Shown here: piece by piece, positions 295-26,259 of the stretch
Layout: the number at the start of each line of letters is the position of its first letter
Numbering within the stretch: the first letter of the stretch is position 1
NCBI GenBank assembly: GCA_002269645.1
Contig: NIVC01002252.1
Location: 62,001-126,000, forward strand
Direction: 5' to 3'
DNA: 64,000 bases
Source of the DNA: Macrostomum lignano
Lineage: Eukaryota
Made by a program: the position numbers and the translations under genes
Notes under the pieces: generated by a model
What the model was told of the DNA's origin: nothing
The model's input: only the letters and a program-made list of their open reading frames with translations
Database searches by the model: none

Positions 295-2214
295 ATGCCA
301 GAAGAAGTTGGCAGATCACTGTGGTCAGCATCAGTTCTACTTCTCTGCTTGTTCTCAGTCTGCAAGCTTAAACCGTAAGTTCAGAAAAGCTCTTTTCCCT
401 TTAACTGTTGCTGAGAAGCTCGAACGAGCGTATATTTTTTGAAAAAAAGAACATTATTCTAGTTATTTGTGATAATATTTTTGATATACGTCATAAGTTA
501 TATACGATATATGACATACATGTATTTGATATATGTCATACGTCTAGTTTATGTTTGCGCTAGTAGTTTTGATTAAGTTTATTTGAATTGCTGTGACTCT
601 TAGAATCTGACGTGCATGTAATAATCTAGCGTACGCGCTATAACAAAAAGTAGATAAATGCCACAAATTAAGTATCGAATCGTTATAAAAGTTTCAAAAA
701 ACCAACCTGCTCGTCAAAAACCTGACAGGTGCCTATCAGAGAATCATTACTGCCCAATGGCCACCGAATTTACGGTTCTGCTTGATGATTACAGCCACAG
801 AAATGCGACATTCATTCCGAGAAGTCAAGATGGAATTAACGATGGTCCTATTGTAACGGGGCGCTGCAAGTGGACCGTTAAAATCAAAGCGCCAGAAAAT
901 CAGCAAGTTTTGGTGCAAAGACTTCCCGGAATTCCAGCTAAAAATTCTATCAAGCGAAATTCTAGCCTCCTACAGAATGTACTAATCTCCAACCAAAAAG
1001 GACTCAACGACGAGATACGTAGCGCTTCATTTTCTGTGCATTCAGCGCAAAAAAGGTAAGCATGTACAAAAAACTCCTATCAAAAAATTTCCTAAATAAT
1101 TTTTGCGCATCTTTCTTGTCATAATTTAGAAGCAAGTTTGAAATTTCAATCACCTGGGAGGCGGGCAGCTTAAAATCTTACGGCGACTTAGACAATGTTA
1201 GAGTCATGCTACCAATACCTGGATACTGCAGTCGCACCATGCTGGCCTTCAATGGGAAGTGCTATGCTATGAGTGCAGTTGAACAAAATGTCACCGACGC
1301 CATGTCCAGCGTCAGGGGCGATGCTCAGCTGGCCAGCTTCTCAAGCATGACTGACATCTGCGAGTTCGTTGCAGCCAGTGAGAAAATGTTTGGTTCAAAT
1401 GTCAGAGCCGGTGTTTTATTTCATTTATTGTACACATTGAAAATAAAAAAATAACTTTTTCAGACAAAGCAAGAGCAAATGAGTATCCATACAGACGGCC
1501 TCTCCATCTGAGCCAGCGGGTCCGTCTCGGCATGTTTCTCGATTCAGCCGATGCGACAGTGCTGTCCGTGGTCAGGAGTGACAGCGGCTGCCTGCTGAAG
1601 CCTGTAGCTAACTTGGATGAATTCAGGTGAGACTCAAGCTCAATTATTGATTTACTCGCATACCCGATTGTAATAAAATGTATCTTCGAAACTTTTTCAG
1701 AGTAACTGGCGGAGTGACAGGTTCATGTCTGTCTCTCAGAGCGACCGAGTCAGACACGGTGATAGTCGAGCTCGGCGACTGCAGCAGCCCGATGCTGTCG
1801 CTACTGAGCTTCCCGGAGACTGCGCGCTCCGTGCCGAGCTCAGCGCACTGCAATGGCAGCGAGCTGATTGGCCTGATCCACCAACTGCTCAGTCCTGCTG
1901 CAAGTCTGTTCTCTGCAAGTCTGAGAATTTCTGCTGTCACGACTAGTCCAGATATTAAAGCTGCAGCCATACCATTTGAACTCATAATTGTTTCTGGGTG
2001 TGTGGGACTTCTAATTTGTGTCGCAGCCATTTTGATATACTTTTACTTGAAGCGTCGTTCTGGTCGAAATGCTCAACATTATGGAAACGGAGGACAACCG
2101 GCCACCCAAACTATGCAGGAAAACCAGTTACCACTATTGGAATCACCTCTCGAGAGACGTGAATCAAATCAAGTTGCAGAGTCTACTACAGATCGTCAAG
2201 AAAGTTTAGTGTGA
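295..2214 (+). CDS. CUB-like/CTLD-like type I membrane protein, array copy 1 (exons 295-374, 729-1055, 1130-1377, 1464-1626, 1701-2214; ~443 aa)
   Basis: All introns are GT-AG with matching phases (2,2,1,2). Signal-like MPEEVGRSLWSASVLLLCLFSVC; CUB-like RCKWTVKIKAPENQQVLVQ; CTLD-like CSRTMLAFNGKCYAMS..QLASFSS; TM LIIVSGCVGLLICVAAILIYFYL followed by KRR; ends in ESLV. Confidence 0.85.
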
Positions 2215-2633
2215 CATCGAAATTCAGTCGAAATTTGGAAAAGATACTCTCGGTACCGGTATATCAATAGAGAGTAAACAACGAAAATTGCTTTCCACTT
2301 TAACTGTTCAGTATATGAAAATTCGCATTTAGTCACATTGTGGAACAATTCTACTACCGTGCAAACGACGAAAAATAAAGGTACGTAAATAGAATGCACA
2401 GGCGACAATATTTTTAGGCAGCTATTTTTAGCTATGACAAAGTTCTATACCTATATGCGAATGTGTCATAAATATATATATAGAAATTACTAAACGCAAG
2501 CACGTACCATGTACAATGTACTTTTGTATTTTGTTCCTAAAAGAGGGTATCAAACCAATGATATAAATAAGTATCATGATGTTCTAACATCACCCTAGAA
2601 AAAATGCATCAGTGACACTCTGTATGCACTTGT

Positions 2634-4300
2634 ACCGGCAGCATTTGCTTCTTGCTACTTTAACAATACTTTTACCATTGTAAGTACCACTCAAAGAAAT
2701 AACCAAATCAAGCTTATATATGCAAGCGAAACAAGCATACTTGTCCTCATCATGCTTTTTATATTGCATCATTATTTTAGAGTCGAGTCAGCCAACCACT
2801 ACTGCGTGAACGGACAAACCCTAAGCATTGAACTGGACGATTTCTACCACCGAGACGAGACAATAATTCCTCAGGTTCTTGACGAGCCGAGGCACAAACT
2901 GATGAAGCCAAAGGACTGCAGGTGGGAGGTCCTACTGACATCCTCAAATCCAGACCTGCAGTTTGTCCTCGAAGGATTGCACAGCAATGGTAGAAGCAGA
3001 GAGATCAAAGACAAATTCGACAGTAAAAATGAAAGCGCCAGTGTTGTTATGGACTCGAGAACGCGTATTGTTGCAGGCATGTTTCAGGTGCAGCCACTGA
3101 ATAAGAGGTGAGTGCGTGAGACGCAAGAAATAAAATTTTGATCCTGATAAAAAAATTAACTGAAGTGATTCATTTATTTTAACTCTTTCAATTTCAGCAA
3201 GCACTTCTTTCTCACAGCAAGTTGGGATCCTAGAACGCAAAAGCCGCAAGCAGAAAACTTAAGAATATTGTTACCACTGCCTAGATATTGTAGTCGGGAC
3301 ATGCTCAGCTTCAATGGGAGCTGCTATGCTGTGAGCGCAGTTAAACAAAATTTGACCAAGGCCATGTCCAGCATTGGAGGCGATGCTCAGCTGGCCAGCT
3401 TCTCCAGTCTTGCTGAGATCACTGAGTTCGTTGCTGCTAGTAAGTGCGACGTGCATTAATACTCAAAGTTAATTTTAAAATGGTAAAAGCTAATCGGCAT
3501 TTCTACGAGTATAATCAACCAGACTCCCTAAATCCTTGGCTAACTTGCAGATAACAAAAAGCTGCAGGAGTTCCCGTACAGACGGCCCCTGAGCCTGGGC
3601 CAGCCGGTCCGTCTCGGCATGCTTCTCAACCGATCCAGTGCGTCCGTGATGTCTGCGGTCCGGAGTGACAGCGGCTGTCGGCTGGAGTCGGTTTCAGGCA
3701 GCGGTGAATTCGGGTAAAGTTTGGCTCTGCCATTTTTATTAATAAATGCAAATTAATAACTTGAAGAAGTGATTTTTTTAAATTTACTTTTTTTACTTTT
3801 AAATGCATTTTAGTGCTTCTGGTGACACAATAAAAGGTCCGTGCTTGTCTCTTAGGCTTACGAAGTCGAATAGAGGGGTGGTTGAGTTCAGCAACTGCAG
3901 CAGCCGGATGCTTTCGCTGCTGAGCTTCCCGGAGACTGCGCGCTCCGTGCCGAGCTCAGCGCACTGCAGCGGCAGCGAGATGGCAAATCTGATTGAGCAG
4001 CTGGCGAGCCGTCTATACAAAAATTCGTCAAGTCCAGTTCCTAATGAGGCTGCTACTCCGCCGTGGTGGGCTTTCCGCAGTTTCTCTTTTTTCTGGGTCG
4101 CTATCACCTTGTCGAGCTTAGCATTGGCAGTAGCTGTTTCGGTCTGGCGGAACTGCCGACAGCAGTCGCTGACGAAGTCAATTGACGCCGTGGAATCTGA
4201 CAAGTACTCTGACGAGTCACTAATAAATAGTGAAGAAGCTGAGCAACAGACGGTCACTCTTGCATCTGTAAACAACTCCGTGGACATGCGGATCAAATAG
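2634..4300 (+). CDS. CUB-like/CTLD-like type I membrane protein, array copy 2 (exons 2634-2689, 2781-3107, 3198-3439, 3551-3713, 3814-4300; ~424 aa)
   Basis: Same five-exon structure and phases as copy 1, with identical exon 2 (327 nt) and exon 4 (163 nt) lengths. Signal MHLYRQHLLLATLTILLPL; NHYC..CRWEV; TM FSFFWVAITLSSLALAVAVSVW. Confidence 0.85.
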
Positions 4301-5406
4301 TTTTCATGTAACTTTTGCGTTGCTTTTGTCAGAATATGGCGAAAATTGTACCAATTCACATTTAAATGACTCTCGATGGATATATTTTTAACTGGCTTTG
4401 CATAAATATTCAGCTATCCGCTTATAAAACAAGTGGGAAAATTGATGCATATTCCCAGAATCGTACTTCAAAACTGACTATTTTTAACAAGCATGCTATC
4501 TGCTTACATGTACGGATGTACCTGATTTATATCTAGTCAAGAAATTATTTAATCAATAGTTTCTATTTACAATATGCTCGTTCGTTTTCACAATTTTTAA
4601 TTACTTTATTATTTGTAAATAGTGTATTTAAGTACAAAAAATAGTACATCTGAAATGAAATTACCAGAAAAAAACTGCGTAGAATTTTACCAGACTTTAG
4701 CATACTTCAAAAGTACTTTTCTGTTGTCTGATCTCATTAGTGTACCTAACGCAATGCATAATGGCTTTTCGTGAATTCCAGAGTGATAAAAATTATACTT
4801 AATGTACGACCTACGAGCTATGTGCTTTATTTTCTTCATTTGAAGTGAGATTTAGATATATGGATTGACTATTAGCTCGTAATTTCTCTTGACCTGTTGT
4901 CGAGTTTCAAGTTGACAACAATCGTTCCGCCTAGCTATTTTCTTTTAATATTGTACGTGGAAAATTTGGGTAGCCAAATAGTCTCTGTAAACCTTGGTAA
5001 ACAGTTTTTATTACTGATTAACACCTAGAATATACATGTACTTTTACAACTGGTTGCTATATTGCAAAATCGAAAGGGAAAAGCAGCAAGGCAACAGAAA
5101 GCCGCTAAAGCATAGGCAATATGATGAATAAAGATAGAGAGCCACTGTACAGTCTGTGATCGTGTTGAATGGGTTTTCCGTGGCCTCACCGCCATATACG
5201 CTCTTTTCTATTTTTAGAAATGACTGATCTACGCTCGTACAGTCGGCTGTTCCTTATACAGTACGAGTAAATTTGGGTGTTAGTTAGTTCCATGTACGAG
5301 CTATAAATAAAGGAACTAATTTTTTTTATCTTGCAGCTTCCTATCGGTTGAGCTAAATCCATCGCAGCTTTCTACAGAAAGAAACAATTGCTATGATAGT
5401 TGAATC

Positions 5407-7234
5407 ATGGCGTCGCGTTATCTTTCCCTTGTTGCCATTGCTCTGGTTTTGTCTAAGTAAGTTAAAACCTAACTGCGTTAAAAATGTTTGCTTTGATAAA
5501 TATATTTCATTACCAGTAACAAAATTACTCGTACTGTGTCCAGGTACCACTGCATCACTAAGGAGATTGAGCTAAACGACGACAAGAGAGAGTTAATAAT
5601 CAGTGTAGATTTGAGAAACCACAGACCACAGAGTTGGGAGGTGAGATTGAGCTCTAGAAGCTCCAATCAACAGGTACTGCTTGAAGGAACTGACCTCACT
5701 GACAGCGCTTATGCTGTCAGCTATTCGCTGGGAACCGACTCAAGAATAGCGACTAGTGGACTATTTCACATCTTTGCTCTCCAACAGGATTAAGTTTTGG
5801 CATAACTTTATTTAGTATACATCGATTATACCGCAGACAATGTGATTCTGTATATGCAGTATTTGACGTCAACTATTCCAGACTGAAACTGCGCATAGAG
5901 GCAAAGCTGATGCAAAGCGGCAAATGGCAAAGTTCGACCATCTTGAGACTTCAGCTGATAAACCCTGAAAAGTGCGCCGCTGACATGCTCAGTTATCGAG
6001 GCTGGTGCTATGTTGACAGTTCAGTACCGCAGAATATTACAGAAGCGATGTTGAGCATTAGAGGCAATGCTCAGCTGGCCAGCTTTTCCAGCCTGAATGA
6101 GATGCAAGAGCTCATCCGTGCTAGTGAGTTTTTAAAATACACTAATCATATATCTAAGGGCTACGAGCTACTAATACCCTGCTCATTTTCTTACAGACAA
6201 CAAGCCACTATTAACTCCTCCGTTCAAGCGACAAATCGACCTTAAGCAAGCAGCTCGTATCGGCATGTTCCGAGGCGATTCCAAGGCGCCAATAATGTCT
6301 CTAATCAATGGTGGCAGCCACTGCGAATTGCAGCCAGTTCAGCAGTACAAGGATCTCATGTGAGCATTCAATTGACGTGAAAACGTGAAGATTTTCGGCA
6401 TTACCTTTTTAACTTTTATTTCTTCTTTTTAGTGTAAACAATAAAACAAATGGTATATATTGGTCTATACGGGAGGTAACATCTGATGGCGCTGAGATGG
6501 AACTGAATGATTGCAACAGTCCAATGCCATCACTAATAAGTTTCCCACAGACAGCCAATTCTGAATCGCTGCATTTCTCCGACTGTCATAGCGACAGCAT
6601 TATTCACCTTGTTACCGAACTGGTCGGTTCTTTTGCGAACAACAGATCAACGTTGCTCACAGGCGGCACCATTCCAACCAACTATGATGATAGAAATGGC
6701 AATGGAAGTGCTCAATGGGCAAGCGGCGCTATTGGTAACTCTACGGCGGAATATAGATCGGAGAAAAATACTCTAGGATTATTGGGAACTAGCATCTTAA
6801 CTGTCATTTCTTTACTTGCACTTATTTTTGCTGTCGTCTATTGCTTTCGCAACCATTTTTGTACAAGGACACATGTTGCGTCTACTGAGAGGGAGCTGGA
6901 ATCAACGCATGATTTAAGACAGAGTGAACGAATGGAAGTTGCCCATAGGCAAAACTCCGCCCAAGATGTAGTCTCATTGGAACCGAACTCCGCCCAAGAT
7001 TTAGTCGCTTCGGAACGGAACTCCGCCCAAGATGCAGTCGCTTCGGAACGGAACTCCGCCCAAGATGCAGTCGCTTCGGAACGGAACTCCGCCCAAGATG
7101 CAGTCGCTTCGGAACGGAACTCCGCCCAAGATGTAGTCGCTTCGGAACGGAATTCCGACAAAGATTCAGTTACTTCAGAGCAGAAGAATTTCCCATTTAT
7201 TATAAACTCGAATATGCATGATGCATTGTGCTAA
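5407..7234 (+). CDS. Divergent array copy 3 (exons 5407-5456, ~5517-5789, 5882-6123, 6197-6359, 6433-7234); intron 2 donor appears mutated, so possibly a pseudogene or a truncated secreted form
   Basis: Signal MASRYLSLVAIALVLS; exons 3 and 4 have the family lengths (242 and 163 nt); TM LGLLGTSILTVISLLALIFAVVYCF. At the expected phase-2 donor the sequence is GA|TTAAGT instead of GA|GTAAGT, and read-through meets TAA at 5791. Confidence 0.7.
6950..7170 (+). repeat. 33-bp coding minisatellite (NSAQDAVASER, ~6 units) in the cytoplasmic tail of copy 3
   Basis: Direct repeats of aactccgcccaagatgcagtcgcttcggaacgg, in frame with the exon 5 ORF. Confidence 0.9.
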
Positions 7235-8343: not shown

Positions 8344-11300
8344 ATGTTCGATTATTTAAAAAAATTATCAGCAGTCCTTCTTCATGACAACCCTTTGACA
8401 TCATATATACTGCTGATCTTACTAGTGGCTTTCTTCACCCAGCTGTGAGTGATATTTGATACATATATTAAGGTCGAATGTATAGAGTAAGTGGGGTTGT
8501 AGCCTAGTGGTTAGAGCGTCGGACTCACGACTAAACGGTCGGGGGTTCGATTCTCGCTCCACTCGGAACAATTTGTGTCGCTTGAACAAGACACTTAACT
8601 CTAAATTGCTTTAGTTCACCCAGCGGTAAAATGGGTGCCAAAATTAGGGTAGGGGGGGGGTAATTGGGGGTGTGTGTGTTAGGAACCCCCCAGTCCTTGC
8701 ACTTTGGGGCTGGGTAGTCATTTATTGTGATTATTATCAATGTTATAATTATATTGCCGTCTAATTATAGTAATCGTGAGTTGGCATATGTACAGTTAGT
8801 ACTCACCTATTCATGTCTGCAGATGCCAGTCAGACAATCACCACTGCAGCCCACTGGGCCAGCACGTTCTACCACTCGACAAAAGAATGAACAAAGACGA
8901 GACTCTGATACCGGAGCTGCAGGATGTTGACAGCGTGAATCGATTCGATTACAACCGCTGCCGATGGAGATTCAAGAAGAACTCGAGACCGCAGACTGGC
9001 GTCCAGTTAGTTGTGCAAGGACTGCCTCTGGCCACTGAATTCAGCCGCTGCGTCAACAAGGCCGAAATTCAAATTAAGAGTTCGTTGGGATGGAAAAAGA
9101 AAATTGAAGCCGGATCCATTCACGTGTTTTCGCTATTTAAGAGGTACTGCTAAATTTTTGCAATCTCGTAGATACTAATGTGTTTTAAAATAGTAAATGT
9201 CATATAAGTGGTGTGAAAATCAAATATAAATTCATATATCTGTTCGCTCACTTCAGACAGTCGTTAGACATCGAAGCGTACTGGAAGGCCAACACTCCAG
9301 CAGTGGACAGATGCGCCATGAAAGTGCGAGTGCTGGTTCCGATTCAACAAGACTGCAGTCCAGACATGCTCGGATTTCGTGGCAACTGCTTCGCCCTGAG
9401 CACACAGAAACAAAATTTAACAGACGCAATGTCCAACATCGGAGGCGATGCTCAGCTGGCCAGCTTCTCCAGCATGGCTGAGGTATCCGAGTTCATCGCG
9501 GCAAGTGAGTAATATGATGATTTAAACAAAATTGCAACAATATAAAATTACTGCAATTTGCATATAATTATTGCTTATGTACACTGGTTTAAGACACAGC
9601 CAGGCAGCACAAGTACCCACACGAGAGGCCTCTGAGCCTGGGTCAACCGGTCCGTCTCGGCATGTTTCTCAACGCATCCGCTGCTGAAGTTCTGTCACTG
9701 GTCAGGAGTGACAGCAGCTGTCAGATGCAGCCTGTTGCGAAGCTGTCCAATTTTTCGTAAGTTTTGTGTTCTCGTAGCGTCATTTCGTTACAAACCAGTT
9801 TGATTGGCCTTCATAAGCACTTTATAAAATCGCTGTAAATTTCAGAGCGACTGGCATAGTGACAGGTCCGTGCTTGACACTGAGGGTGAATAAGTCCGAC
9901 GCAGCGGTGATCGAGTTCGGTGACTGCAGCAGCCCGATGCTGTCGCTGCTGAGCTTCCCGGAGACTGCGCGCTCCGTGCCGAGCTCAGCAGTGCACTGCA
10001 GCGGCAGCGAGCTGGCGACTCTTCTGGATCGGCTTCAGAGTCGCTTTGCGGATGCCGAGTCCAGTCCAGAGTTTTCTGCTCAAGGGAAAAATAATTCGGC
10101 TAGAGAAGGAAATGAGTTATTTTTCCAGAAGAATCAGGATTTTATCTATCCCGCCATTATCGTTGGCGCACTGCTGCTGATTGCTGTCTTTGTGGTGATG
10201 GCGTTCGCGATGAAGCTTCGACGGCGTCGCAAGCTGAAATACCTGCTGAATTACGAACCCCAAGAATCTAAACAGCTACGAGTAGATCACACGCAAATTG
10301 CTGAGCCACCAAAAAATTTTGGGAATTATGCTGATGATTACGTGGCCAGTACGTTGTATCAATTGTCATGAAGTCTTTGTTTCAAGTCCTGTTCTCTGAA
10401 TGAAGTCTTTGTTCAAGCCCGATGTCTCACAATTTCAGAGCGACACCCTCAAGCTGACGACATCACAGCGCCTGCTCTGCACACCTCGTCCAGCATTGAC
10501 AGCCTGGACCTGCTGGCCGCAGCCAAACGGCCGCAGCTTCGTCAGCAAGAGGTCCCCAGCAGTTTGTCATCCACAGCAGACCTTTACTTGGCCGCCAGGC
10601 TGGCCGGGGATGAGAGCAGCGAAGATTTCTCAGATTTGGTGCCGAATTCGTCGGACAGGTTCGGACACTCCGATTCCGAGTCTTTGTCCTCCTCTCTGTT
10701 GGACTCAGCTGTTGGTGGCGCCTCTGGAGAGGTGAGTTGGTTTCTGGCTTCATCTGCGAGTCTGTTTGCCACTCTGTCTCACTCTAAACCTCTGCCTACC
10801 TGTCTATCTCACCCTTTATTTCACTGTCTACCTCTCTGTCTCATACTATACCTCAACTTCTACTTTTCTATCTCACCCTGTTTCCTTGTCTACCTGTATT
10901 TCATCTTGCGCACCTGTCTACATATACCTCTCTAATCTATGTGTTAAGCTGCTGATGAAAAGATTTGACCCACACGTTTATTTATAAATCCTGCTGGAAA
11001 AAGACGACAGCTCGCAGCACTTTAACTACGCGTTCCCTGTCTGATGAATAACCTTTATTAGTACCTCTGAATTAGTTTTAGATAAGGTATATTTATTTAC
11101 GAGCTACAAATTTTATGTTAATGCTGTTAGCTAGATTAGCAATCCAGTTCGTATAATTATTTCCCTTAATCCCTTGCATTTCGCACCTGCAGCCCATTAG
11201 CAATAGTCAATCGGCATCCAACGTTAGCCGCACCAAACAAACGGAGCAGCAGCAACGGAATGAGAAGCCTGATGACTCACGAGAGGATCGGAGCGAGCTG

Positions 11301-11519
11301 CCCCAAGCTAACAACACCAAATATTTGCGGCGCCTTTACCGCCAAAAAATCGATCAATCTGACGCCCGGCATCCTCAGACACCAAAGATCGCGGCTGCGG
11401 TTCGGACATGCAGCGTCCGTTTCGACAACCGAAACTCGAATTTCGAGAAGACCCAGCTGACAGCGGCGAGATCGAAGGTCAGCGACTGGATCGGGGAGAA
11501 CTGCCTCCGGAAGGAATGA
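8344..11519 (+). CDS. Array copy 4 (exons 8344-8444, 8823-9143, 9257-9504, 9594-9756, 9846-10371 short form ~452 aa; or 9846-10348, 10439-10731, 11193-11519 long form ~651 aa)
   Basis: Phases match the family; hydrophobic leader YILLILLVAFFTQL; TM FIYPAIIVGALLLIAVFVVMAFAM followed by KLRRRRK. Two further open exons downstream are phase-compatible (A|gtacgt..tttcag|AG; GAG|gtgagt..ctgcag|CCC). Confidence 0.8.
8492..8750 (+). mobile_element. tRNA-derived SINE with CORE-like central domain, in intron 1 of copy 4
   Basis: A box TAGCCTAGTGG and B box GGTTCGATTC; then tgtgtcgcttgaacaagacacttaactct...gtaaaatggg, resembling the CORE/MIR consensus; ends in an (att)-rich tail. Confidence 0.7.
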
Positions 11520-12960: not shown

Positions 12961-13427
12961 CATAGACCCAAGCACCAAACTGTCAGAGCAGAGATTTCCA
13001 GGTCACCGCTGCACCTCAGCAACTCCGTGGCCGAGCTGGAGGATCTCGGCCTTCAGAGGTGCCTGATCACAGCGGATCGCTTCTCCGCTTCCAGCAACTC
13101 CTGGTCCAGGTCACCATTCCCATGGTCTCTCCTTCCGCCCTGGTGTCGCCGCTCGCCGTCCTCGTGTCGTCGATCGAACGCTACCTCGGTGAGTTCTTCG
13201 TTGTTTCGTAAACCGCCGACTCTGAATCCTCCATGGAGCCCTGAGCCCTGCGCCTGAGATTTTGTCAGTCTCTCTTGCAACGCAAGCTTGTCGCCAAAGC
13301 AGAATACATTCGATGTCCTTCGATGCTAAAAATTACGAGCTAAATAATACATTTACTCCCAGCTCTTGTCGCGACTCTTCAATACCCTTCATTTTCTAGT
13401 CGACGTATTTGTACTACTCTTCTCAAA

Positions 13428-13570
13428 GTCCAGTCGGTCAATCACTACTGCGTGAACGGGCAAACCTAAAGAATTAAAATGGATGACATCTATCATCGAG
13501 ACGCGATAATGAGGTTCATCAGGTCCAGGACGAGCCGATCAGGCACAAGCTGCACAAACCGTTAAACCGC
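13428..13570 (+). pseudogene. Relic exon 2 of the CUB-CTLD family (copy 2-like)
   Basis: VQSVNHYCVNGQT*RIKMDDIYHRD aligns to copy 2 ESANHYCVNGQTLSIELDDFYHRD, with an in-frame TAA and a frameshift; no downstream exons. Confidence 0.75.
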
Positions 13571-14072
13571 CGCCCTTGATACAGACAACACCGCCTACCC
13601 AATACAGCCTGATAAAGGCCACTGACAGTGCCAGTAGCTCTTGGGTTCAGGTCGCTGACCCTGTTCTTAAAACTGCATCTGACCTTTGACACTCCTGACA
13701 CCGCCAACCCTGACACTGCCGATCCCCATCTTCAGAAAATTGGCTGAATCCCTAAAATGTCTGTTGTTTGTTAAAGAGATTAGTTTTCGTCAGAATCACA
13801 CACCCACAACAATTTATTTTAGTCCGCAAACTTGGAACCAAAAAAACTGCACATATGAGAGTCCCGTTTACACGGTAGAATTCGCAGTAGAGTACACTGT
13901 ACGCTCGTTATTGAGTAACTAATGCTATTTTTAGACCTAACGTCATGCTTAAAGACGATTAGCTACTTAATGCATTTTTATATGAATCACAACCTTCATG
14001 TCTAATATCATGCGAGATAGATCGAAAACTTTCTTGATACTTCAAAGTAAATTTGTGTTTTCCGGATAAATT

Positions 14073-14495
14073 ATGGTAAGCCCCACTAATATTGTCAACC
14101 AATTGTTAGCAAAAATATTCAAAGAAATTCAAACATTTGAAATGCAAATATAAATTCGTCTGAGTTTTATGCCTCACAAAATAAACAGGCAAATACGTAA
14201 GAAATTCCCGTTAAATTTTATTTCAAAACTGTCGCTTTCGTTCGCTGTGTTCCTCTTGACGTTCTGTCCGAAAGTGAATCAACAAACTTTGCAATAAAGT
14301 AAATTTCGTAATCGTACTATATATCATGTTTTTATTACCAAATCTAATTGCTCGCATCGATCATAAAAAACTAAACTTGCAACAATTAATTTTTGTAAGG
14401 TCTACGGAGGACAACCATTACTGTCTCCATGGAGATCGTCAGTCACAGTGCAAATACACGATTATTATAACCGAGACGCAACTATCGTTCCCATC
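14073..14495 (+). pseudogene. 5' relic of a copy 5-like paralog (ATG micro-exon, decayed signal exon, start of exon 2)
   Basis: ATG|gtaagc at 14073; signal exon with damaged sites (tttt-atttca; cc|gaaagt); DNHYCLHGD then a 2-nt frameshift before SVTVQIHDYYNRDATIVP. Colinear with 16577-16995. Confidence 0.7.
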
Positions 14496-14538: not shown

Positions 14539-15312
14539 CTAAAGTTTAGTAGTTTCAAGTAGCAACTCAGACGTCTGGTCCTCTGCGCCTTTTGTAGCCG
14601 CCCTAGCTACCATTCCCAGTCTCTGCTCCTCCCTGCTGAGCTGATAGAGAAATCGAATACAGCCTGCATCGCCGTATAATAACGACAGCTGCTGCAAAGG
14701 CAGGAGCATGACAGGAGAAGAAACAGCACACTCTATGATTGCTGCTGGCAGGTCAGCCTCCCGGTCTGTCTCTCGCTGAGAAATTGTCCCATTGTCAGCT
14801 GGTGGAATTGCTGAGATGAAGCTCAGCAGCTGATTGATTTTGCTGGACAGCAAGCTGACGTTGCAGGGCGCGGAGTTCGGTACGGAGCGCGCAGTCTGCG
14901 GGAAGCTCAGCAGCGACAGCATCGGGCTGCTGCAGTCGCCGAACTCTATCACCGCTGCTTCGGACCCTCAATGACAAGCACAGACCTGTCACTCTGCCTG
15001 TCACTCTGAAATTTACAGCGAGAATACGTGAATGAATCCGGCTTTAATTGTCTCTTTCTATCCCAACGAACTTTTGATTTGAGTTTCGGCTTCGTTGACG
15101 CACCGGCTGAATTCAGTGGCCAGAGGCAGTCCTTGCACAACTAACTGGACGCCAGTCTGCGGTCCCGAGTTCTTCTTGAATCTCCATCGGCAGCAGTTGT
15201 AATCGAATCGTTTAACGCTGTCAGCATCCTGCAGTGCCTGTATCAGAGTCTCAAATTTGTTGATTCTATTGTCAAGAAGTAGAACGTGCTGGCCCAACGG
15301 TCTGCAGTGGTG
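14539..15312 (-). pseudogene. Inverted, internally deleted paralog (copy 4-like exon 2 fused to exon 5)
   Basis: Exon 2 is close to copy 4 (GQHVL..RFDYNCCRWRFKKNS); exons 3-4 are absent; a 7-nt deletion frameshifts the CLSLRV/EFGDC segment; the TM region is frameshifted. Confidence 0.85.
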
Positions 15313-15450
15313 ATTAATAATAATAGTAATAATAACAGTAATTGATTATGGGCTGCAACCGACATCTCTGAAGGCTGCGTACGGCTGTTCAGTCCAGGGA
15401 CTGGGGGGTTGCCACACACACACCCTCAATTACCCCTGCCCACCACCCTT
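15312..15450 (-). mobile_element. 3' part of a SINE related to 8492-8750
   Basis: Reverse complement gggtaattgagggtgtgtgtgtggcaacccccagtccctggac matches 8658-8702, followed by an (att)n tail. Confidence 0.55.
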
Positions 15451-16079
15451 GATACAGACTACTGACACTGCCCGTGCCTACCTCTCTTGATACAGGCTAT
15501 TGACACTGCCCCTAATTCCTAAATTCACGCTCCTGATCCTGCTCTTAAACATGGAGCTAAAAAACTGTTTTCATTCAACTCTCGTTAACATGGAACTAAA
15601 AAACTGCTCATAGCAGAGTCCCTTTTTACAAGGTAGGAGCTAGTATTCGCAGTTGAGTACACTCACCTCAGTACATTCATTGTTGTAAAAAATACTATTT
15701 TTAGACTGCTGTCAGAGCCATGAAAGACGATTGGTTAATGTTTAAACATACATTTGTATATATGACACCCTTTTAAACAGCTTGCGAGAAAATTTCAAAA
15801 CCAGCTCGATGATATTTCAAAAATTGTGCTCTTCGGATTCAAAAGGAATCATGGTAAGCTGGATTATCAATATATTGTAAACCTACTATTAGCAAAAATA
15901 TTCAAAGAAATCCGAACAATTTAAAAGCAAACATAATGATCTGCTATACAATGTTATACAATGATCTTGTATAACAGAACAAAATCCTTTCTTACGCGGT
16001 AGTATTTGCAGTTGGTACACTCACCTCTGTACGCTCGTGCATTGTAGTCAATAGCTACATAATATATATACGAGCTATA

Positions 16080-16474: not shown

Positions 16475-16576
16475 TATATATAGCTTGTATCAAACGCCTT
16501 TTAAACACCTTGTGAAAAGTTTTAAAACCAGCTTGATTATATTAAAAAACTGTGCTCTTTGTATTTAAATGGAATA

Positions 16577-18581
16577 ATGGTAAGCTACATTGTCAGTGTC
16601 AATATTTAAACATATTATAAGTAAAATTATTGAAAATCTGAGCCATAGAAACACAAATATACAACTGATGTCTAACATCCATCTGAATAAAATCTCCAAG
16701 ACTAAACTGCAACGAAAATTCCCTAAAATTTTAGATTTCAGCACATCTGTGGCTTTTATTGACTGTAGTCTTCATGACGTTTTATCCGTAAGTGAATTTT
16801 CATGCAACTTATAAAATCTTTTAAACTAACACAGTTTTATTTCCTTTTCGAGTACAAAAAACGAAATAAAAACAAAGCTTGCAACAAATAATTTTGTAAC
16901 CCAGTTCCGCCGAAGAAAACCACTACTGCCTCCATGGAGAGTCGGTCACAGTTCAAATAGACGACTATTATAACCGAGACGAGACCATCGTTCCCATGAT
17001 TCTGGGCGAGTCAACTAAAGGCCAGCGTAAGCCCAAGCAATGCAGGTGGGACATCAGACTGAAGACAGCGAAACCAGGCATGCAACTTGTGATTGCAGCG
17101 GTGCCCAGCAAGAAAGACCGATCGACTGCTGCCGATGGGAAAGCCAGAATGTCGGTCGATTACTTGAACCGCAATTTCATCATCGTTACGACCGGCATGT
17201 TTCAAGTTCTACCAGCGACAGAGCAGTGAGTACAGCTCAAGTTGATGCTGTTTTTCACGTTGAATCGTTGAATTCGATGAATCAAAGAAAACTTGGTGAC
17301 TTCATTTCAGTCAGCGCTTCACAGTCGACCTCAGCTGGGATCCAGGGATGCAGAAACCGGGCTTCGACAACCTGAGGATATTGCTGCCGATTCCGGGACA
17401 GTGCGGCCGAGACATGCTGTGGTTCAGTGGCAGCTGCTATGCTGTCAGTGCAGTGCGGCAGAGTATGGCTGACGCTACGGATAGCGTTGGAGGCGATGCT
17501 CAGCTGGCCAGCTTCTCCAGCATGGCTGAGATCAGCGAGTTCATCGCTGCCAGTGAGTTATCAGTAGTTGTGTTTGTAGCTCGTAACAGAACTGAACTCA
17601 ATTAGGCAACTAAAACACTCGCGTCTCTTGCATTGCAGACACGGCAAGGCAGAATGAGTTTCCCTACCGAAGTCCTCTGAGCCTGCGCCAGCCAGTCCGT
17701 CTCGGCATGTTTCTGAACGCATCCGCTGCCACCGTGCTGACCGCCGTCAGAGGTGACAGCGGCTGCGTGCTGAAGTCTGAAAAGCTCGCAAACATTACGT
17801 AAGCTGTTGAATTTGTACACAGCTTGAACTCATCAAAAGACATCAGAAGACATCAAACTATTTTCTTGTACAGTGGACAATATTTCTTCACTCTTTCAAT
17901 TCGATTCATTTCAAGTCCGACGTGCTTTTCAGAGCGACTGGCCGAGGGAAAGGTCCGTGCCTCTCTCTCAGAGTGACTGAGTCCGATAAAGCAGTGGTCG
18001 AGTTCGGCGACTGCGGCAGCCCGATGCTGTCGCTGCTGAGCTTCCCGGAGACTGCGCGCTCCGTGCCGAGCTCAGCAGCGCACTGCAAGGGCAGCGAGCT
18101 GGCGACTCTTCTGGATCGGCTTCAGAGTCGCTTTGCGGATGCCGAGTCCAGTCTAGCGTTTTCTGCTCAAGGGAAAAATAATTCGGCTAGAGAAGGAAAT
18201 GAGTCATTTTTCCAGAAAAATCAGGCTTTTATCTATCCTGCCATTATCGTTAGTGCACTGTTGCTGATTGCTGTCTTTGTGCTGCTGGCAGTCGCGATGA
18301 AGCGTCGACGGCGACAGCGTTCTCAGCCGAACGCATCAAATTCTGAGTCTGTTGTCCTTCCTCTATCTGGTGTCCACCGTTCAGCCTCCACTCGCTCCGA
18401 TCGCCACGAGAAGGGCACAAAGGGAAGCAACTCGGTCGGCGCATCGTTAGAAGATGATCACTGGAAGGTCGCTACGGAAAAACTACTTTCCAATGGTAAT
18501 CAACCTCTGTTAGATGGTCCGCCAAGTTTAACTCGTGAATCGCAGACTCTGGGTGTCATTGATTTGAACCTTGCTGTATGA
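16577..18581 (+). CDS. Array copy 5 (exons ..16577-16579 ATG only, 16735-16787, 16905-17225, 17311-17552, 17639-17798, 17933-18581; ~475 aa); chimeric
   Basis: M|ISAHLWLLLTVVFMTFYP|SAEENHYC; phases consistent; TM FIYPAIIVSALLLIAVFVLLAVAM followed by KRRRRQR. Confidence 0.85.
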
Positions 18582-19681: not shown

Positions 19682-19817
19682 TACTCAGCAGCAGTCAAAA
19701 GCTCCACCTGTACAAATCACGCGTAGTTAGATAGAAAACTTCTCATTTAAAACGCACGGTAAAAGGTCAGTAAAATATCTTTGATTGATGGTTGGAACTT
19801 TTGACTGTTGTTGAGTA
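19682..19817. mobile_element. MITE-like element A (TIRs ~27 bp, TA-flanked)
   Basis: Left end tactcagcagcagtcaaaagctcc; right end reverse complement tactcaacaacagtcaaaagttcc; TA on both sides. Confidence 0.6.
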
Positions 19818-19819
19818 TA

Positions 19820-20094
19820 TACTCAGCAACATTGAAAAGTCGCCACTCTATGCGCCAGTGAGCAATTTCTCTTGGACTATTCTGAAATAAAAGACACGAG
19901 AAAACTGAGTAGTAGCTTTAATCCGTCCAACCTTCGCACACCGCTCCCCCCACTTCATTCCTCAACCAAAGTCTGCCGCGTGGCATAGCTGAGTTGCGTC
20001 ACTCGCAAAGATTGAGAGACTTTACCTGCACTCTCGAAAGTGGCGACCACAGACGGAAAATTCTGGGATGGCGAATTTTCGATGTTGCTGAGTG
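19820..20094. mobile_element. MITE-like element B (TIRs ~26 bp, TA-flanked)
   Basis: Left end tactcagcaacattgaaaagtcgcca; right end reverse complement cactcagcaacatcgaaaattcgcca; TA on both sides, consistent with a Tc1/mariner-type TSD. Confidence 0.65.
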
Positions 20095-21186
20095 TATATT
20101 CAGCCCGTTGTCTCACGCGTTTTCCGCTGCTGAAATTAAGGCTGCTACCCTAAAAGTGCATAAATAATGTAGGCCTGAGTTTTTAAGTCGTTGCCGCTAA
20201 ATTCTTTTCAAAGGATATTTTACAGAAATACTGCAACCGGCAGCTACTGAATCAGCATCTCAAAAAGAGAACTTACTCTAAACAGTTGACATGCGCGCGG
20301 CCTATCAAATTATCGTAGCTAGATTCCGTGTATATACCGTCGTTTGAGTTGGACTTCTAATGGACTTTTGGGGATGCTTGTGAGCAATCTAAAACCAGAC
20401 ATGAGGCTCAAGTTTTAATAGTACATTTATGTAGTGGCTTGCTTTTAATACTTCTTTATCGGAAACTCTCGTTTTGAGAAACTACGAGCACTTTGAGAAG
20501 TAGAGAAGATCGAGCTTGCCTGTTAGCCGAATATATCGGAATTGCACTTGTAAAATGATGAGAGAAAAGCTGCGTTATACGAGCTGGAAAGGCTAAAAGG
20601 CTTAAAATCTCACGCTTTAAACCGATCTCACAGATTATCATCCAATGTTAAAGGACCGATATAAGGAGTATATACGAGCTATGTAAGGGTGAATGTATAT
20701 AAATTTGAAATAATAAATTAAAAAGGGAACCATATAATAACAAAATACTTGGCAATTCGTGTTGTCGCTTGTAAGTCGTTACCACACACCAAGTTTCAGC
20801 AAATATGCACTTTACATTACCTTGCTCATGGTACGAATAATCATTTGGAACTCAGCAAATTACTGTATTACAGTGACAGATGGCCTTGGAGCAATCCAAA
20901 TTGAGAAAATTTTGAGTAGATATTAAGTCGATGGTTTTTCAGACCATCAGCAGTCTAAACAGAATCTGGTAGCTAAAAATATTTTTAAAGTCTTCAAATT
21001 TCTTTAATCACCTAGTTGCATACTTTATCGAATATTTAAACTGACTGATTTTGTACATTTTGGCAGTAACTAATCCTCTTTCGTTACTCAGGTATTAATG
21101 GCCACACCTGAAAAGATCCTAAGGTTATATTTTGACGATTGTCTGGAAGGCTTTGACGATAAGATGCAGTCAATTTGAGTGCATAG

Positions 21187-23253
21187 CTTTGGCGCAGGTC
21201 CTCTGTTGTTTTCTTCCTGTGTATTTGCCTTTATGTGCCGTATTCGAGTCAAGTGGCAAGTTTTCCCTTAGCTGTGTGAGGCATGGTTGTTCAATAATGT
21301 TGCGAGCTCGAATTTCGCAACTGAGCATGATCGTGCTCAGGATTAGGATCATGTTTCAGGTGTAAAAAATGGAACGTACTCAACGCATTGGCTTCGTATA
21401 TGCATTCCAAAAATTTCGCAGCGAATCACTATTGCATACGGGACCATACGTCAAATCGACTAATTGATGAGTTCTACAACCGGGACGAGTTGCTCATACC
21501 ACGCGTTCTTGGCACGTCCTCTCAGGGCCAGTTCCAAATAAAATGCAGGTGGGACATCAGATTGAAGACAGAGAAGCCCGGCATGCAACTCGTGATTGCA
21601 GCGATGCCCAACAAGAACAACCGATCAACAACTACAGATGAGGAGGTCAAAATGTCGGTCGACTTCATAAACAGCAATTTCGTCAGCGTTACGACCGGCA
21701 TGTTTCAAGTTCTACCAGCGGCAGAGCAGTGAGTACAGCTCAAGCTGATGCTGATTGTCTCGTTAGCGTTCCATGAATCAAGGAAAACTTGGCGATTTCA
21801 TTTTAAGTCGGCGCTTCACCGTCGACCTCAACTGGGATGCACGAGTGCAGAAACGGAGCTCCGACAACCTGAGGATATTGCTGCCGATTCAGGGACAGTG
21901 CGGCCGAGACATGCTGTGGTTCAGTGGCAGCTGCTATGCTGTCAGTGCAGTGCGGCAGAGTATGGCAGACGCTACGGATAGCGTTGGAGGCGATGCTCAG
22001 CTGGCCAGCTTCTCCAGCATGGCTGAGATCAGCGAGTTCATCGCTGCTAGTGAGTCATTATGAGCTGTCTTCGTTGGACTCGCTTTTAAGTACGTACGAG
22101 CCGCCTCAAGCACACAAATCCCATCTCATTGAATTGCAGACACGGAAAGGCAGAAAGAGTTTCCCTACCGACGGCCTCTGAGTCTGAAACAGCCGGTTCG
22201 CCTCGTCATGTTCCACAATGCATCAGCTGCTGCCGTGTTGTCCGCGGTCAGGAGTGACAGCGGCTGCCTTCTGCAGCTTGTGTCGAATTCGTTTAACTTT
22301 TCGTAAGGCTTTGAGTCTGTTGGAATTTTGTTTTGGTTGCGTTTTAATTTCACTTCTGTTTGTCTCCATCTTGTGTGCATGACAAAGTGTGGAACCAGTC
22401 CGAAAATTGGTGGCCCTCGGCGCTCGCTGATAGGCTGGACCTATTCGTTGTCACCTTCGATTGTTTGTGTTCGAATTTCTCTTGGCCCTTTATCACTTAA
22501 GCCGTCCAAACACGCTGTTGATTTATCCAAATCCAAATCCGATATCCAAATCTTTTACACAGTCAGAATTTCGGTTTGGATTCGGGATTTACGTCAGGGA
22601 CATCATGCTGGCTCATGCAGAATCTTGATCTAGTATGAGCCAAATAAAGCGCATGAATTGCAGCACGATATTAAAATATTTCCAGACTGACTGGCCGAGA
22701 GAGAGGTCCATGCCTGTCTCTAAGGGTGACTGACGAAGACTCAGCGGTGGTCAAGTTCGTGAACTGCAGCAGCCCGATGCTGTCGCTGCTGAGCTTCCCG
22801 GAGACTGCGCTCTCTGTACCGAGTTCAGCGCACTGCAGCGGCAGCGAGCTCATGAAGCTGGTTCAACTGAAGCTGAGCTACCAAGTCAGCACAACTCTGA
22901 GCCCTAGCCAGATTCATTCTCGGATAACTCGGATAGCGGTTCTCTGTTCCGTTGGCTTGGGTGTCCCCTTGCTGATTGGCGTCCTTGTCGGCTTGTCGTG
23001 CGTGCTATACCGGCGACGAAGGAGTTTCGATATCCGAGGAAACAATCCGGAAGAAGACCAACAACAAGACCCTGCAAGGGCCGTTTCAGCAATCTCAGAT
23101 AACAATCCGGTAAGACAGCGAAACCCAATAATGTCCGGGTTCAGACGTCTGCCTTCATTCCGTCAAAGTCGCCGAGAAAGAGGGGACCGTGGAATTGCAT
23201 TAGCGGAACAAAATGGAAACGCAGCGCTTGACCCCAACGCTAATAAACCATAA
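21187..23253 (+). CDS. Array copy 6 (5' exons uncertain; exon 2 ends 21728; then 21808-22049, 22140-22302, 22686-23253)
   Basis: NHYC..KCRWDIRLK; exons of 242 and 163 nt; TM IAVLCSVGLGVPLLIGVLVGLSCVLY followed by RRRR. A candidate signal exon LWRRSSVVFFLCICLYVP lies at 21187-21239, but the start codon is unresolved. Confidence 0.75.
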
Positions 23254-24650
23254 TCGTCTTTGCGGCATTCAGATATTTAATATTCGAATTGAATAAGGAT
23301 ATTAAACATGAATAAAGCTATAATAATATAACTGATCGCACTTACTGAAGCTAATATATAAATTAACCTTCCCAATTTATACATTTTGGGTGATTACTGC
23401 ATATCGTTGAACTGTTTACTTAATATGCTTGAATTGCCAAAGCTTGTGATAGACAAAGTCAATGTTTAAAACTCGATCGTACATGTATTGAATATTTTTA
23501 TGGTGCAACACTTCGACACAAATGTTTACAATGATTTTAAAAATAACATTTACAGCTATTTACTTTCTGCACCACGATGCTTTGGAGTTGCTTAATGAGC
23601 GTGCGAGTATGCAGTTTATTTTTTGGGTAAATGTTTAGTTCTAAATACATTTAAAAGTATTCGCTAATGCCCTCTGACCCCTCTCTTCTTGTTTTTATAT
23701 TTATACTGCGTATAGCTATATATTACATATCTAACATTTCTAATGTAAGCATGCAGTTTTTTATTTTGTATTAGCTTTTGCTGAAAGCAATACCTCCTAG
23801 TTTTCCGAAACTTGCCGCCCGTTGTCTTGAAGAGCTTATAACTGGCTGACAATGTCTACAAATTATGACTTTTTCGCTTTTTTAATTGATTTTACTCTAG
23901 CCTTTACAGACTTCTATTCAGATCATTACTGATTCTTGGCAGTGTATATTTTTGTTTTTGAGATTTTAGCTGACAGTTATTACCGGTTATTAAGCTTATT
24001 ATTCGAATTAAGAATTCAAATTACTGATGCGCTTTAATTTTCAGTTATGTATTTTGAGGTCTTACTTTTATAAACCAAATAAACCTCACTGGAGTAAATG
24101 TGTATCACTACATAAGCTACACATTAGCTAACATTATAGTACATTAAATCTGGAGTCAAATTTTTACATTTGCATGAAAGCTTTCATGCCAAATTGAACC
24201 CTAGCTACAGATTTTGTACGCGTTTGGCGAACGCTGCTTTGTACAGTACGTGTAGAGTTATTTTTGGACCAGATAAAGGGGAACTTTGATTCAATGCAAG
24301 CGTCCCCCGTGTTCAGGTGTACATTGCAGTGTACATGTTTCTAAAAATAGAAAGCGAAAACACAAAAATATACTTGACTCTAAATGTTCCGTATTAGAAT
24401 GTTTTAATGCGTCATGATTTAATGCAAAGTTCCTACCTTGATTGACTGAAATATCTTAGCTAAAAAGGCTGCAAATTCAAAGAATCTTTCAGGAATCTAC
24501 TCGGTAGTTATCAAAAGAAAAAAAAGAAATTTTGCTTCTAACTAACGCTTTCCTGGTGAGCAACCTATTTGAAGCAGATTTTCATGCTTCATTGGCACTA
24601 GCTGCGAGGAAAATATCAATATAATCCAGCCTATATGTTTTGCATTTCAG

Positions 24651-26259
24651 ATGCGTGTTCTACCGTGGCATCTACTAATACTCGAACTTACATGTCCTCG
24701 AAGGAGTGTCCAGCAGCGAAGGAACTGACAGTTCAGCCTCGGCTAACCAAACAGAGATACCGCTAGAGATTATGGGAATCGATGCTCATGCTTACCAGCA
24801 TGTTGACGCTGGCACGTTGCGTGTGATCTCGCTGAATAAAATGTAAGAATTTCCTTTGGTAAAACACAGATGGGCGCGTTTTCACCCGGTTCTTGCATTA
24901 TTACCAAATTTGCTGTTACCTTCTCGTCACGCCCTAACAGGGAGTTCTTCTCCGTCAGAGCGAACTATAATCCTAGGAAGCAAAAAATGCAGCTGAAAAA
25001 GCTAAGGATTGCTATGCCACTTCCCACAGTCTGCAGTCGAGGCATGCTCGGCTTCAACGGCAGCTGCTACGCTTTGAGTGCGGTCAGACAGAATTTAACA
25101 GCCGCAATGTCCAGCATCAGAGGCGATGCTCAGCTGGCCAGCTTCTCCAGCATGTCTGAGATCAGCGAGTTCATCGCTGCCAGTGAGTTGAGGTGATTGC
25201 TATACTCAGCAACAGCTAAGCCTCCTCTGTGGAGCAGTGTGATAATGTTGAGCATTAGTGATTTATCTGTCACAAGAGTTCATTGATCAGGATCTTAGCC
25301 ATGGGAAGGGAGAGGGGGTCCGCGCACGTCCTTCACACGTCCTTGACTTACGTGTCACCTTAAGTACAGCTCAACCAAGTGCAATCAACTCTGACTTAGC
25401 TTAATCCAATATAAAACTTAATGAAAATTATATTTATATCCATTCGGATATTCCAGACAAAGCAAATCTGAATGAGTTCCCCTACAGGCGGCCCCTGAGC
25501 CTGGGCCAGCCGGTCCGTCTCGGCATGTTTATCAACGCAGCCGATGTCCAAGTGCTGTCCTTAGTCAGAACTGATACCGGCTGTCAGCTGCTACCTGTAG
25601 CTGACTTTGATGAATTCCAGTGAGATTCAAACTCAAGTAAGGTTTATTGATGTATTCAATTGTAATAAAGTACTATTGGGTGACTTTTCAGAGTGACTGG
25701 CAGAGTGACAGGTCCGTGCCTGTCTCTGAGAGTGGCCGCATCAAGCAGAGCGGTGGTCGAGTTCAGCAACTGCAGCAGCCCGATGCTGTCGCTGCTGAGC
25801 TTCCCGGAGACTCCCAGTTCATTGCTGTGCTTTGAGCACTGCAACATTACCGACACTGTGACCAATGAACCGATCCAGTTTGAGATGTCGACTCCTCAGT
25901 ACGCATCTGAGTACGCGATGAATGCTCTGAATTGGAGCACCAGCGCTAATGACACAGTGGCATATTTTGATGGCGACTCAGCGCTTGGTGTTGACTTTCG
26001 ATACCTTATCTTCATCCTAATAGGAGTGAGCTGCATTAGCACGACTTTATGGCTACTATCTAAATTGTGTCAGTCAGCAGCAAACCAGTCTGACTATTTT
26101 CTAACAGTCAGAGCATTAACCTGTAGTGCCAAAGTTTTATTATTTAATAAAAGTACAATCAAGGTGACAATATTCAGATTTTGTGTTAGAATTCCATTTA
26201 TTAGTGCATATTTTAATTTTGATTTTTATGTATCAAGCAAACAGTTTGTATTGGCATAA
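24651..26259 (+). pseudogene. Array copy 7, 5'-degenerate (24651-24842, 24941-25182, 25457-25619, 25692-..); probable pseudogene or N-terminally truncated gene
   Basis: Exons 3-5 are intact, with family lengths and TM FRYLIFILIGVSCISTTLWLL. The CUB exon lacks the NHYC half and has TAA at 24676 in the frame of the downstream donor; no convincing signal exon was found. Confidence 0.6.

Follow-up and report, generated by a model that had tools for sequence, protein, structure and literature searches.

Clusters of tandem immune-type receptor genes, such as rodent Ly49/Klra, the NKG2 receptors with a C-type lectin-like domain (CTLD), KIR, and MHC class I/II with its 'micro-conversion', evolve as patchworks through gene conversion. 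A tandem array of receptor-type genes that resembles them in several respects is described here from Macrostomum lignano. The array lies on contig NIVC01002252.1 of GenBank assembly GCA_002269645.1, in a stretch of 64,000 nucleotides (nt; positions 62,001 to 126,000 of the forward strand) that is called the window throughout and to whose own numbering all coordinates refer. Positions 295-26259 of the window contain seven same-strand paralogs, c1 to c7, and one inverted pseudogene. Each copy is laid out as a signal peptide, a very divergent N-terminal beta-sandwich, a CTLD, a stalk, a transmembrane (TM) helix and a cytoplasmic tail, and within the CTLD coding sequence three short blocks differ far less between copies at synonymous sites than their flanks do. 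The reading preferred here, with confidence a little better than even, is patchwork concerted evolution: ectopic conversion between paralogs and unequal recombination, kept only where the protein tolerates homogenisation.

Common to this array and the Ly49, NKG2, KIR and MHC clusters are tandem paralogs (partly of CTLD fold), mosaic ancestry, short tracts of low synonymous divergence beside diverged ligand-facing segments, and pseudogene fragments within the array. The patches in M. lignano differ in being very short (26 and ~71 nt) and in coinciding with motifs of the structural core. What varies here is a separate domain at the N terminus together with the stalk, and the animal is a free-living flatworm. 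Gene conversion among paralogs is a well-known route of gene-family evolution, and the M. lignano array is most likely one more case of it.

Three further systems invite comparison. The CLEC proteins of Caenorhabditis elegans combine CTLDs with CUB or CUB-like domains and are encoded in lineage-specific tandem clusters. The M. lignano array is likewise a tandem, lineage-specific invertebrate expansion in which a CTLD is paired with a beta-sandwich that may be of CUB type; its products, however, are single-pass membrane proteins with cytoplasmic tails, and the relationship is at fold level only. Conserved elements (promoter conserved sequence elements, exonic CTCF sites) accompany the variable exons of clustered protocadherins. 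These share with the array short DNA motifs that are conserved among tandem paralogous exons beyond the need of the protein, and they are the model for the rival view of the blocks as functional nucleotide elements. In M. lignano, in contrast, every copy comes with a constant part of its own, distant family members lack the motifs, and there is no sign of a bound factor or of promoter choice. Cassettes are exchanged through homology blocks in Plasmodium var genes, through copy-choice at short homologies in lamprey VLR, and through pseudo-V conversion in chicken. There, as in the array, variable segments are bordered by short conserved blocks, with partial inverted cassettes in the neighbourhood and ancestry junctions inside a conserved block. 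Unlike those systems, the array gives no indication of programmed or somatic rearrangement, its fragments are decayed pseudogenes with stops and frameshifts, and the junctions number only three.

Synonymous divergence in the three blocks

Gene models of c1-c7 were assembled manually, guided by GT/AG sites and the conservation of intron phase. A short signal-peptide exon is followed by an exon of ~320 nt that encodes most of the N-terminal domain; the remaining three exons encode the rest of this domain, the conserved domain of ~150 residues, the stalk, the TM helix and the cytoplasmic tail. Block 1 (GGCGATGCTCAGCTGGCCAGCTTCTC, 26 nt, encoding GDAQLASFS) lies at 1317-1342 (+ strand) in c1 and starts at 3379, 6063, 9444, 17492, 21989 and 25122 in the other copies. 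Its seven plus-strand occurrences, none of them expected by chance, show no mismatch in six copies and two mismatches in c3 (6063). Block 2 (17 nt, encoding PVRLGM) lies at 1518-1534 (+) in c1 and starts at 3605, 9648, 17693, 22194 (three mismatches) and 25511 elsewhere; its six occurrences carry 0-3 mismatches, and it is absent from c3. Block 3 (~71 nt, encoding CSSPMLSLLSFPETARSVPSSAHC) lies at 1781-1851 (+) in c1, with further copies at 3897-3967, 9926-9999, 18013-18086, 22766-22836 and 25772-25812, and on the minus strand at 14881-14933. It is near-identical in c1, c2, c4 and c5, of which c4 and c5 share a 3-nt insertion; c6 has four changes in the second half, and c7 has only the first 41 nt. 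An earlier note, made from the letters of the window, had placed the block starts correctly within 1-2 nt. It had lacked the eighth copy of block 3, the minus-strand one, which belongs to the inverted pseudogene.

The blocks coincide exactly with structural core motifs of the CTLD. Block 1 aligns with the GAxLA(S)I strand of CD69 and DC-SIGNR, and no columns other than those of its LA.F are invariant or nearly so in an alignment of 22 family members. Block 2 is the counterpart of the CTLD WIGL strand. Block 3 is the last CTLD core strand with its cysteine, together with the linker to the cysteine of HCxGSE.

Divergence was expressed as Nei-Gojobori proportions in a codon alignment of the CTLD region of six copies (c1, c2, c4, c5, c6 and c7). 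The mean proportion of synonymous differences was 0.52 in the flanks, 0.10 in block 1, 0.20 in block 2 and 0.16 in block 3, and ~0.05 in block 3 among c1, c2, c4 and c5. A comparison of this kind had been set beforehand, with equal divergence in blocks and elsewhere as the outcome that would speak against conversion; synonymous divergence is instead 3-5 times lower in the blocks than in the flanks. The corresponding nonsynonymous means were 0.25, 0.00, 0.05 and 0.07. Nonsynonymous differences thus fall roughly in proportion to synonymous ones, a pattern that a younger coalescence of the blocks predicts. Near-identity that includes third codon positions, as claimed earlier for all three blocks, holds for blocks 1 and 3; block 2 taken alone is weak.

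Codon use points the same way. Among 59 invariant degenerate residues, a single codon is used in all six copies in 20 of 27 block columns and in 6 of 32 columns elsewhere (Fisher 2.4e-5, a circular test in that the blocks were picked by eye). A permutation of runs of single-codon columns, which is independent of the block definition, gave p=0.024 for the longest run and p=0.0027 for the two longest.

Such columns could be thought to arise from purifying selection on the protein in the core of the CTLD, aided by chance and by a preference for certain codons (for accurate translation of critical residues). The blocks are in fact the family's most conserved peptide motifs, and 26 of the 38 block codons are the family's commonest synonym. 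This explanation is nevertheless most unlikely: in 26 of the 32 invariant-residue columns outside the blocks more than one codon is used, and the family shows no more than a mild codon bias. The codons fixed in the blocks have a mean family-wide frequency of 0.37, and rare ones (TCG, CGC, GCG, TCC, CGT), several of them the rarest synonyms, are among them. The same amino acid is also fixed as different codons at different block positions (Ala as GCT, GCC and GCG; Ser as AGC, TCC, TCG and TCA). Similar peptides are encoded by other codons in c3 and in a distant subfamily. In c3 the block-3 peptide is similar (CNSPMPSLISFPQT), yet 9-10 of the 11-12 shared degenerate codons are changed and only 2-3 kept; the synonymous proportion against the other copies is 0.82-0.94, with the peptide pattern retained. 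The earlier contention that protein constraint alone is insufficient is borne out by these rare codons, by the varied codons per residue and by the changed block-3 codons of c3. Codon bias as the cause of the blocks was ruled out on the family's own codon usage and the rare codons that are fixed.

Mosaic ancestry and persistence of the blocks

Two tracts document exchange between copies. A conversion-like tract common to c5 and c6 (17360-17545, + strand; 21857-22042 in c6) is 98-100% identical over ~180 nt of exon 3. Outside it, intron 3 of the two copies is essentially unalignable, the next 58 codons (codons 106-163) are 71% identical and the stalk is unalignable. In a GENECONV-like permutation of polymorphic sites the tract reached a global p<0.0005. 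The second tract, common to c4 and c5 (17992-18290, + strand; ~9905-10226 in c4), runs for ~300 nt from the start of block 3 through the stalk and TM region with 92-100% identity. Upstream of it the two copies are 58-78% identical; exon 3 as such is 58% and the stalk 87% identical. Identity runs at block 3 gave global p values of 0.02-0.04 for the pairs c4-c5, c2-c5 and c1-c5. Copy c5 is a mosaic, with a c6-like front (exons 2-3) and a c4-like back (block 3, stalk and TM).

Gene conversion or recombination operates in the array, as had been suggested before on the strength of the conserved synonymous sites. The segments do not give one tree: c5 is nearest to c6 in exon 3 (98%) and nearest to c4 in the stalk and TM region (87%). 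The abrupt loss of similarity after HCxGSE that had also been reported is found in general, with the exception of c4 and c5, which stay 87-100% identical for another ~200 nt.

Near-identity and mosaics of this kind might arise as assembly artefacts, that is, as consensus chimeras of tandem paralogs. The genome of M. lignano is repeat-rich and partly polyploid, and the window abuts 37 kb of satellites. The blocks, however, are short, share one codon register across seven copies and have unique flanks that assemblers would not confuse. Independent database models also match three copies exactly, namely P0004 for c5 (mosaic junction included), P0006 for c4 and P0010 for c3, which counts against chimerism and leaves an artefact hardly credible.

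Under the preferred reading, the array would evolve through duplication, decay and frequent exchange between paralogs, the exchange taking the form of ectopic gene conversion and unequal crossing-over. An exchange would be lost if it overwrote diverged parts, which presumably face a ligand. Exchanges limited to the three invariant core motifs of the CTLD (the GAxLASF strand, the WIGL-equivalent strand, and the last core strand with its cysteines) would be harmless and could persist. The core stretches would then stay near-identical at all codon positions and turn rich in G+C at third codon positions (GC3), with flanks near synonymous saturation; the N-terminal domain, the stalk and the flanks would diverge or be swapped as modules. 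Crossovers between paralogs would resolve at block 3, the longest identical stretch, and the CTLD and the stalk/TM module would for that reason have different histories. We infer that the blocks themselves are maintained by conversion and that selection trims the tracts.

The length of identity around block 1 varies with the pair compared: 164 nt for c5-c6, 61-66 nt for c5 or c6 with c7, 46 nt for c4 with c5, c6 or c7, and 31-38 nt for most other pairs that do not involve c3. Copies c1, c2, c4 and c5 are identical in the second half of block 3. Constraint on the protein is not strong there, because amino-acid changes occur in the homeologous models P0001-P0003, in the pseudogene and in c6 and c7. 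Invariant residues have a GC3 of 0.81 in the blocks and 0.69 outside them, and variable residues one of 0.58; GC3 is 0.44 in block 3 of c3, and 0.62 in the c5/c6 tract against 0.47-0.56 in the other copies. The raised GC3 of the blocks has, modestly, the direction known from GC-biased conversion.

A serious rival, especially for block 1, is that the blocks are a functional nucleotide element: a subfamily-specific cis-acting RNA or DNA element, such as a protein or small-RNA site, a splicing enhancer or a structured mRNA, whose codon positions are fixed by purifying selection. This is judged possible, if rather doubtful. It is block 1 that speaks for it most directly, with sharp edges that are common to nearly all pairs and with its survival in c3 between flanks of ~50% identity; c3 matches the other copies at 7-8 of 9 degenerate codons in block 1 and at 40-53% elsewhere (P ~0.001-0.01, uncorrected). 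On the other hand, no trace of block 3 is left at the synonymous sites of c3, although the peptide pattern is kept; only four copies have the second half of that block in common; and the variable tract lengths around the blocks suit nested exchanges better than a single fixed element. Three distant family genes on other scaffolds carry QLASFNSS at the position equivalent to block 1. Their synonymous sites vary freely there, so that a nucleotide element common to the whole family does not exist. Two scaffolds with distant family genes, L001 and L002, have no nucleotide-level block in common with the window and match it through an unrelated repeat only. Scans of metagenomes for blocks 1 and 3 gave no matches.

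Symmetry within the blocks would suit such an element as well. Block 1 holds a perfect 12-nt palindrome, AGCTGGCCAGCT, with a CAGCTG core. Block 3 holds an 8-11-nt inverted repeat, GCTGCTGAGCT / AGCTCAGC(AGC), plus CGGAG/CTCCG, and a hairpin is predicted for it in c2, c4, c5 and c6, with stem changes in c6 that are compatible with G-U pairing. The block-3 copy of the inverted pseudogene, 3.5 kb downstream of c4, could yield antisense RNA to all copies if it is transcribed. RNA structure is nevertheless not supported. Folding of eight block-3 copies gave z-scores of -2.4 to +0.8, mostly like those of shuffled sequences, with a hairpin that is inconsistent across copies; RNAalifold found no covariation (term +0.08); and Rfam had 0 matches at E<=1 in window positions 1-27000. 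These tests have low power on copies that are so nearly identical.

Several of these observations weigh against patchwork concerted evolution. Block 1 has just 26 nt, in most pairs its edges coincide to within 0-7 nt, and 24 of its 26 nt are retained in c3 despite flanking exon sequence that is 44-63% identical to the other copies. For conventional conversion this is a short stretch with little homology on either side, and it bears a closer resemblance to a fixed element. The difference in GC3 is modest, and the cells that it compares are not independent of one another; raised GC, clustered identity and a proportional drop of dN and dS would equally be expected of a functional DNA or RNA motif rich in GC. 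The sample consists of seven copies on one haplotype of one species, and chimeric assembly of near-identical paralogs, weighed above, is a further possible source.

Ancestry changes at block 3 in three places: the start of the c4/c5 tract, the end of homology in c7, and the decaying pseudogene. The idea, put forward earlier, that the blocks are anchors that promote shuffling of variable segments is compatible with these junctions; the stretch of highest identity is in any case where crossovers should resolve. In a stronger form of the idea the blocks would be kept for their own sake, either as recombination anchors, perhaps aided by the palindrome and the inverted repeat, or as targets of antisense or small RNA from the inverted pseudogene. 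They would thereby enable swaps of N-terminal and stalk/TM modules in the germline or even in the soma. This is improbable; if true, it would make the array a cassette-shuffling diversification system for a flatworm family of CTLD receptors. Should conversion alone be at work, the array is a clean textbook example and holds no new principle. The array bears on the question whether short conserved DNA patches reflect micro-conversion or a hidden nucleotide function, and on the parts that conversion, selection and domain boundaries play in the diversity of receptors in a spiralian. M. lignano is a model flatworm in which transgenesis is possible, and the array could be a compact, testable case.

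The receptor family and its domains

The genes belong to an uncharacterised receptor family, apparently restricted to Macrostomum, in which a divergent CTLD and a fast-evolving N-terminal domain are encoded in a recombining tandem array. An exhaustive phmmer search returned 27 clusters at 50% identity, and every cluster that was looked up was from M. lignano; no homologs outside the species were found in the protein searches, phmmer included. The family appears to consist of M. lignano-specific type-I membrane proteins. Literature searches found no description of the receptor family, nor of conversion in M. lignano gene clusters. The array bears also on what such receptors recognise, be it in immunity, self/non-self discrimination or gamete recognition.

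The conserved domain was compared with known structures by profile and by model. A family profile (A6) searched against PDB sequences with hmmsearch matched CD69 with E=1.1e-5 and the DC-SIGN family with ~1e-4, and 41 of 41 matches were CTLDs; with a profile built from the window only (A1), all 13 weak matches were CTLDs. An AlphaFold2 model of P0011, a paralog outside the window, has a mean predicted local distance difference test (pLDDT) score of 69 and 80-95 in the ectodomain. When this model was searched with Foldseek, the top 50 PDB matches were all CTLDs (dectin-2, mincle, DC-SIGNR and CD69 among them), with E ~1e-5, probability 1.00 and template modelling scores (target) of 0.55-0.67. 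The model of P0002, which is closer to the window copies, was too poor to use (pLDDT 47). Judged by profile and predicted structure, the conserved domain belongs to the CTLD superfamily. It is a very divergent CTLD; the Pfam profile Lectin_C (PF00059) gave zero matches among 14 family proteins even at E<=1-10.

The signature of Ca2+ and sugar binding was looked for by inspection of the translated copies. The position of WND reads F/L-G/S-D/N (EFGDC), and neither EPN nor QPD is present. The domain is therefore probably not a Ca2+-dependent sugar binder.

The N-terminal exon is as divergent as the earlier note had described it, with 20-38% amino-acid identity between copies and 61% for c5-c6. 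Positive selection on this exon is not evident; synonymous sites are saturated, and the sole usable pair, c5-c6, has a dN/dS of 0.35. In the AlphaFold2 model the domain forms an eight-strand beta-sandwich (residues 31-130), with a conserved NHYC...C(R/K)W. The label CUB, which the note had used for it, could not be confirmed. Pfam CUB (PF00431) gave zero matches at E<=10 among the same number of proteins (14), and CUB chains are absent from the PDB profile matches. At least 12 members are named 'CUB domain-containing' in UniProt, where the names are automatic. The Foldseek list was filled by CTLD matches, and the N-terminal domain was compared only as part of the whole model.

A 21-nt run at the start of the CTLD, CTGATGGAGCCGGGATTCTGC (encoding LMEPGFC), is identical in three distant family genes (L001 14419-14439, L001 18996-19016 and L002 11829-11849). 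By a rough estimate, this run of seven codons is not significant for three genes.

Gene models and surroundings of the array

Copy c1 (295-2214, + strand) has five exons (295-374, 729-1055, 1130-1377, 1464-1626 and 1701-2214) that encode 443 aa; its splice sites are canonical GT/AG, it forms a single open frame, and its intron phases match those of the other copies. Copy c2 (2624-4300, +) also has five exons (2624-2679, 2781-3107, 3198-3439, 3551-3713 and 3814-4300) and encodes 424 aa.

The most divergent copy is c3 (5407-7233, +; exons 5407-5456, 5544-5789, 5882-6123, 6197-6359 and 6433-7233), which keeps only block 1 of the three. Its exon-2 donor (5782-5795) reads GA|TTAAGT, with TT in place of GT, against AG|GTAAGT in the other copies. 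The UniProt model P0010 is 100% identical to c3 but begins in exon 3. The copy may have lost its N-terminal domain or may be a pseudogene. Its cytoplasmic tail contains an in-frame coding tandem repeat of 33 nt at 6953-7170 (6.6 units, approximately NSAQDAVASER).

Copy c4 (8344-11519, +) has seven exons (8344-8444, 8823-9143, 9257-9504, 9594-9756, 9846-10348, 10439-10731, and a last one ending at 11519), two of which are extra tail exons for a long cytoplasmic tail. Exons 5-7 are confirmed by P0006; the acceptor of exon 7 is uncertain. P0014 is ~95% identical to c4 exons 1-3 and represents a homeolog or an allele. A tRNA-like stretch in intron 1 of c4 (8490-8570, GGTTAGAGCGTCGGACT...GGTTCGATTC) resembles a tRNA-derived short interspersed nuclear element; ARAGORN makes no call there and found no tRNA genes.

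Copy c5 (16577-18581, +) has exons at 16735-16787, 16905-17225, 17311-17552, 17639-17798 and 17933-18581, and P0004 is 100% identical to it across exons 2-5. The signal-peptide exon has no in-frame ATG. Translation could start in an upstream micro-exon (16577-16585) that ends in ...ATG|GTAAGC; a spliced leader ending in AUG is the alternative. The 5' module of c5 type occurs three times, at 14.0 kb (14073-14081), 15.8 kb (15851-15859) and 16.5 kb, and two of the three are orphaned or joined to a decayed exon 2. For c6 (21422-23253, +) the exons placed, those after exon 1, are 21422-21728, 21808-22049, 22140-22302 and 22686-23253. In c7 (24679-26259, +) exon 2 is truncated at its 5' end (24679-24842) and is followed by exons at 24941-25182, 25457-25619 and 25692-26259. 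Homology of c7 to the family stops abruptly at 25812, in the middle of block 3; P0001 is a homeologous copy of c7 with a full N-terminal domain.

Pseudogene pieces lie between c4 and c5. The inverted fragment (14542-15345, - strand) consists of a c4-like exon 2 (89% identical) fused directly to exon 5, without exons 3-4; a stop codon and a frameshifting deletion of 8 nt interrupt it, and it retains the first ~53 nt of block 3. Decayed pieces of variable exons at 13427-14494 (+) comprise a c2-like exon-2 fragment (13427-13552) and a c5-like 5' module with the start of exon 2 (14040-14494), of which the exon-2 part is 14366-14494 (+).

Several repeats were observed in and around the genes. The 9-mer TACGAGCTA occurs nine times in the window against 0.37 expected (4812, 4873(-), 5295, 6162, 11098, 13334, 16069, 17577(-) and 20673), always in introns or between genes within the cluster. 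At 5295, 112 nt before the start codon of c3, it is followed by TATAAATA. The 9-mer may have a regulatory role, for instance as a promoter motif, or be a piece of a small repeat. A repeat between c5 and c6 (19815-20098), probably a transposable element, recurs with 89-94% identity as an inverted pair on another M. lignano scaffold (L002 5506-6010 and 7494-7997).

Directly downstream of c7 a 15-nt repeat, CCCTGGTGCTGGTGC, is present in 9.8 copies (26681-26827); in one frame it reads as a Pro/Gly/Ala-rich repeat. From there to the end of the window (26681-64000, ~37 kb) the sequence is nearly all tandem repeats and satellites. These include a 39-nt unit in 228 copies with 99% identity (31859-40729), a 45-nt array with a 364-nt higher-order unit (59250-62775), and a dozen other satellites and microsatellites.

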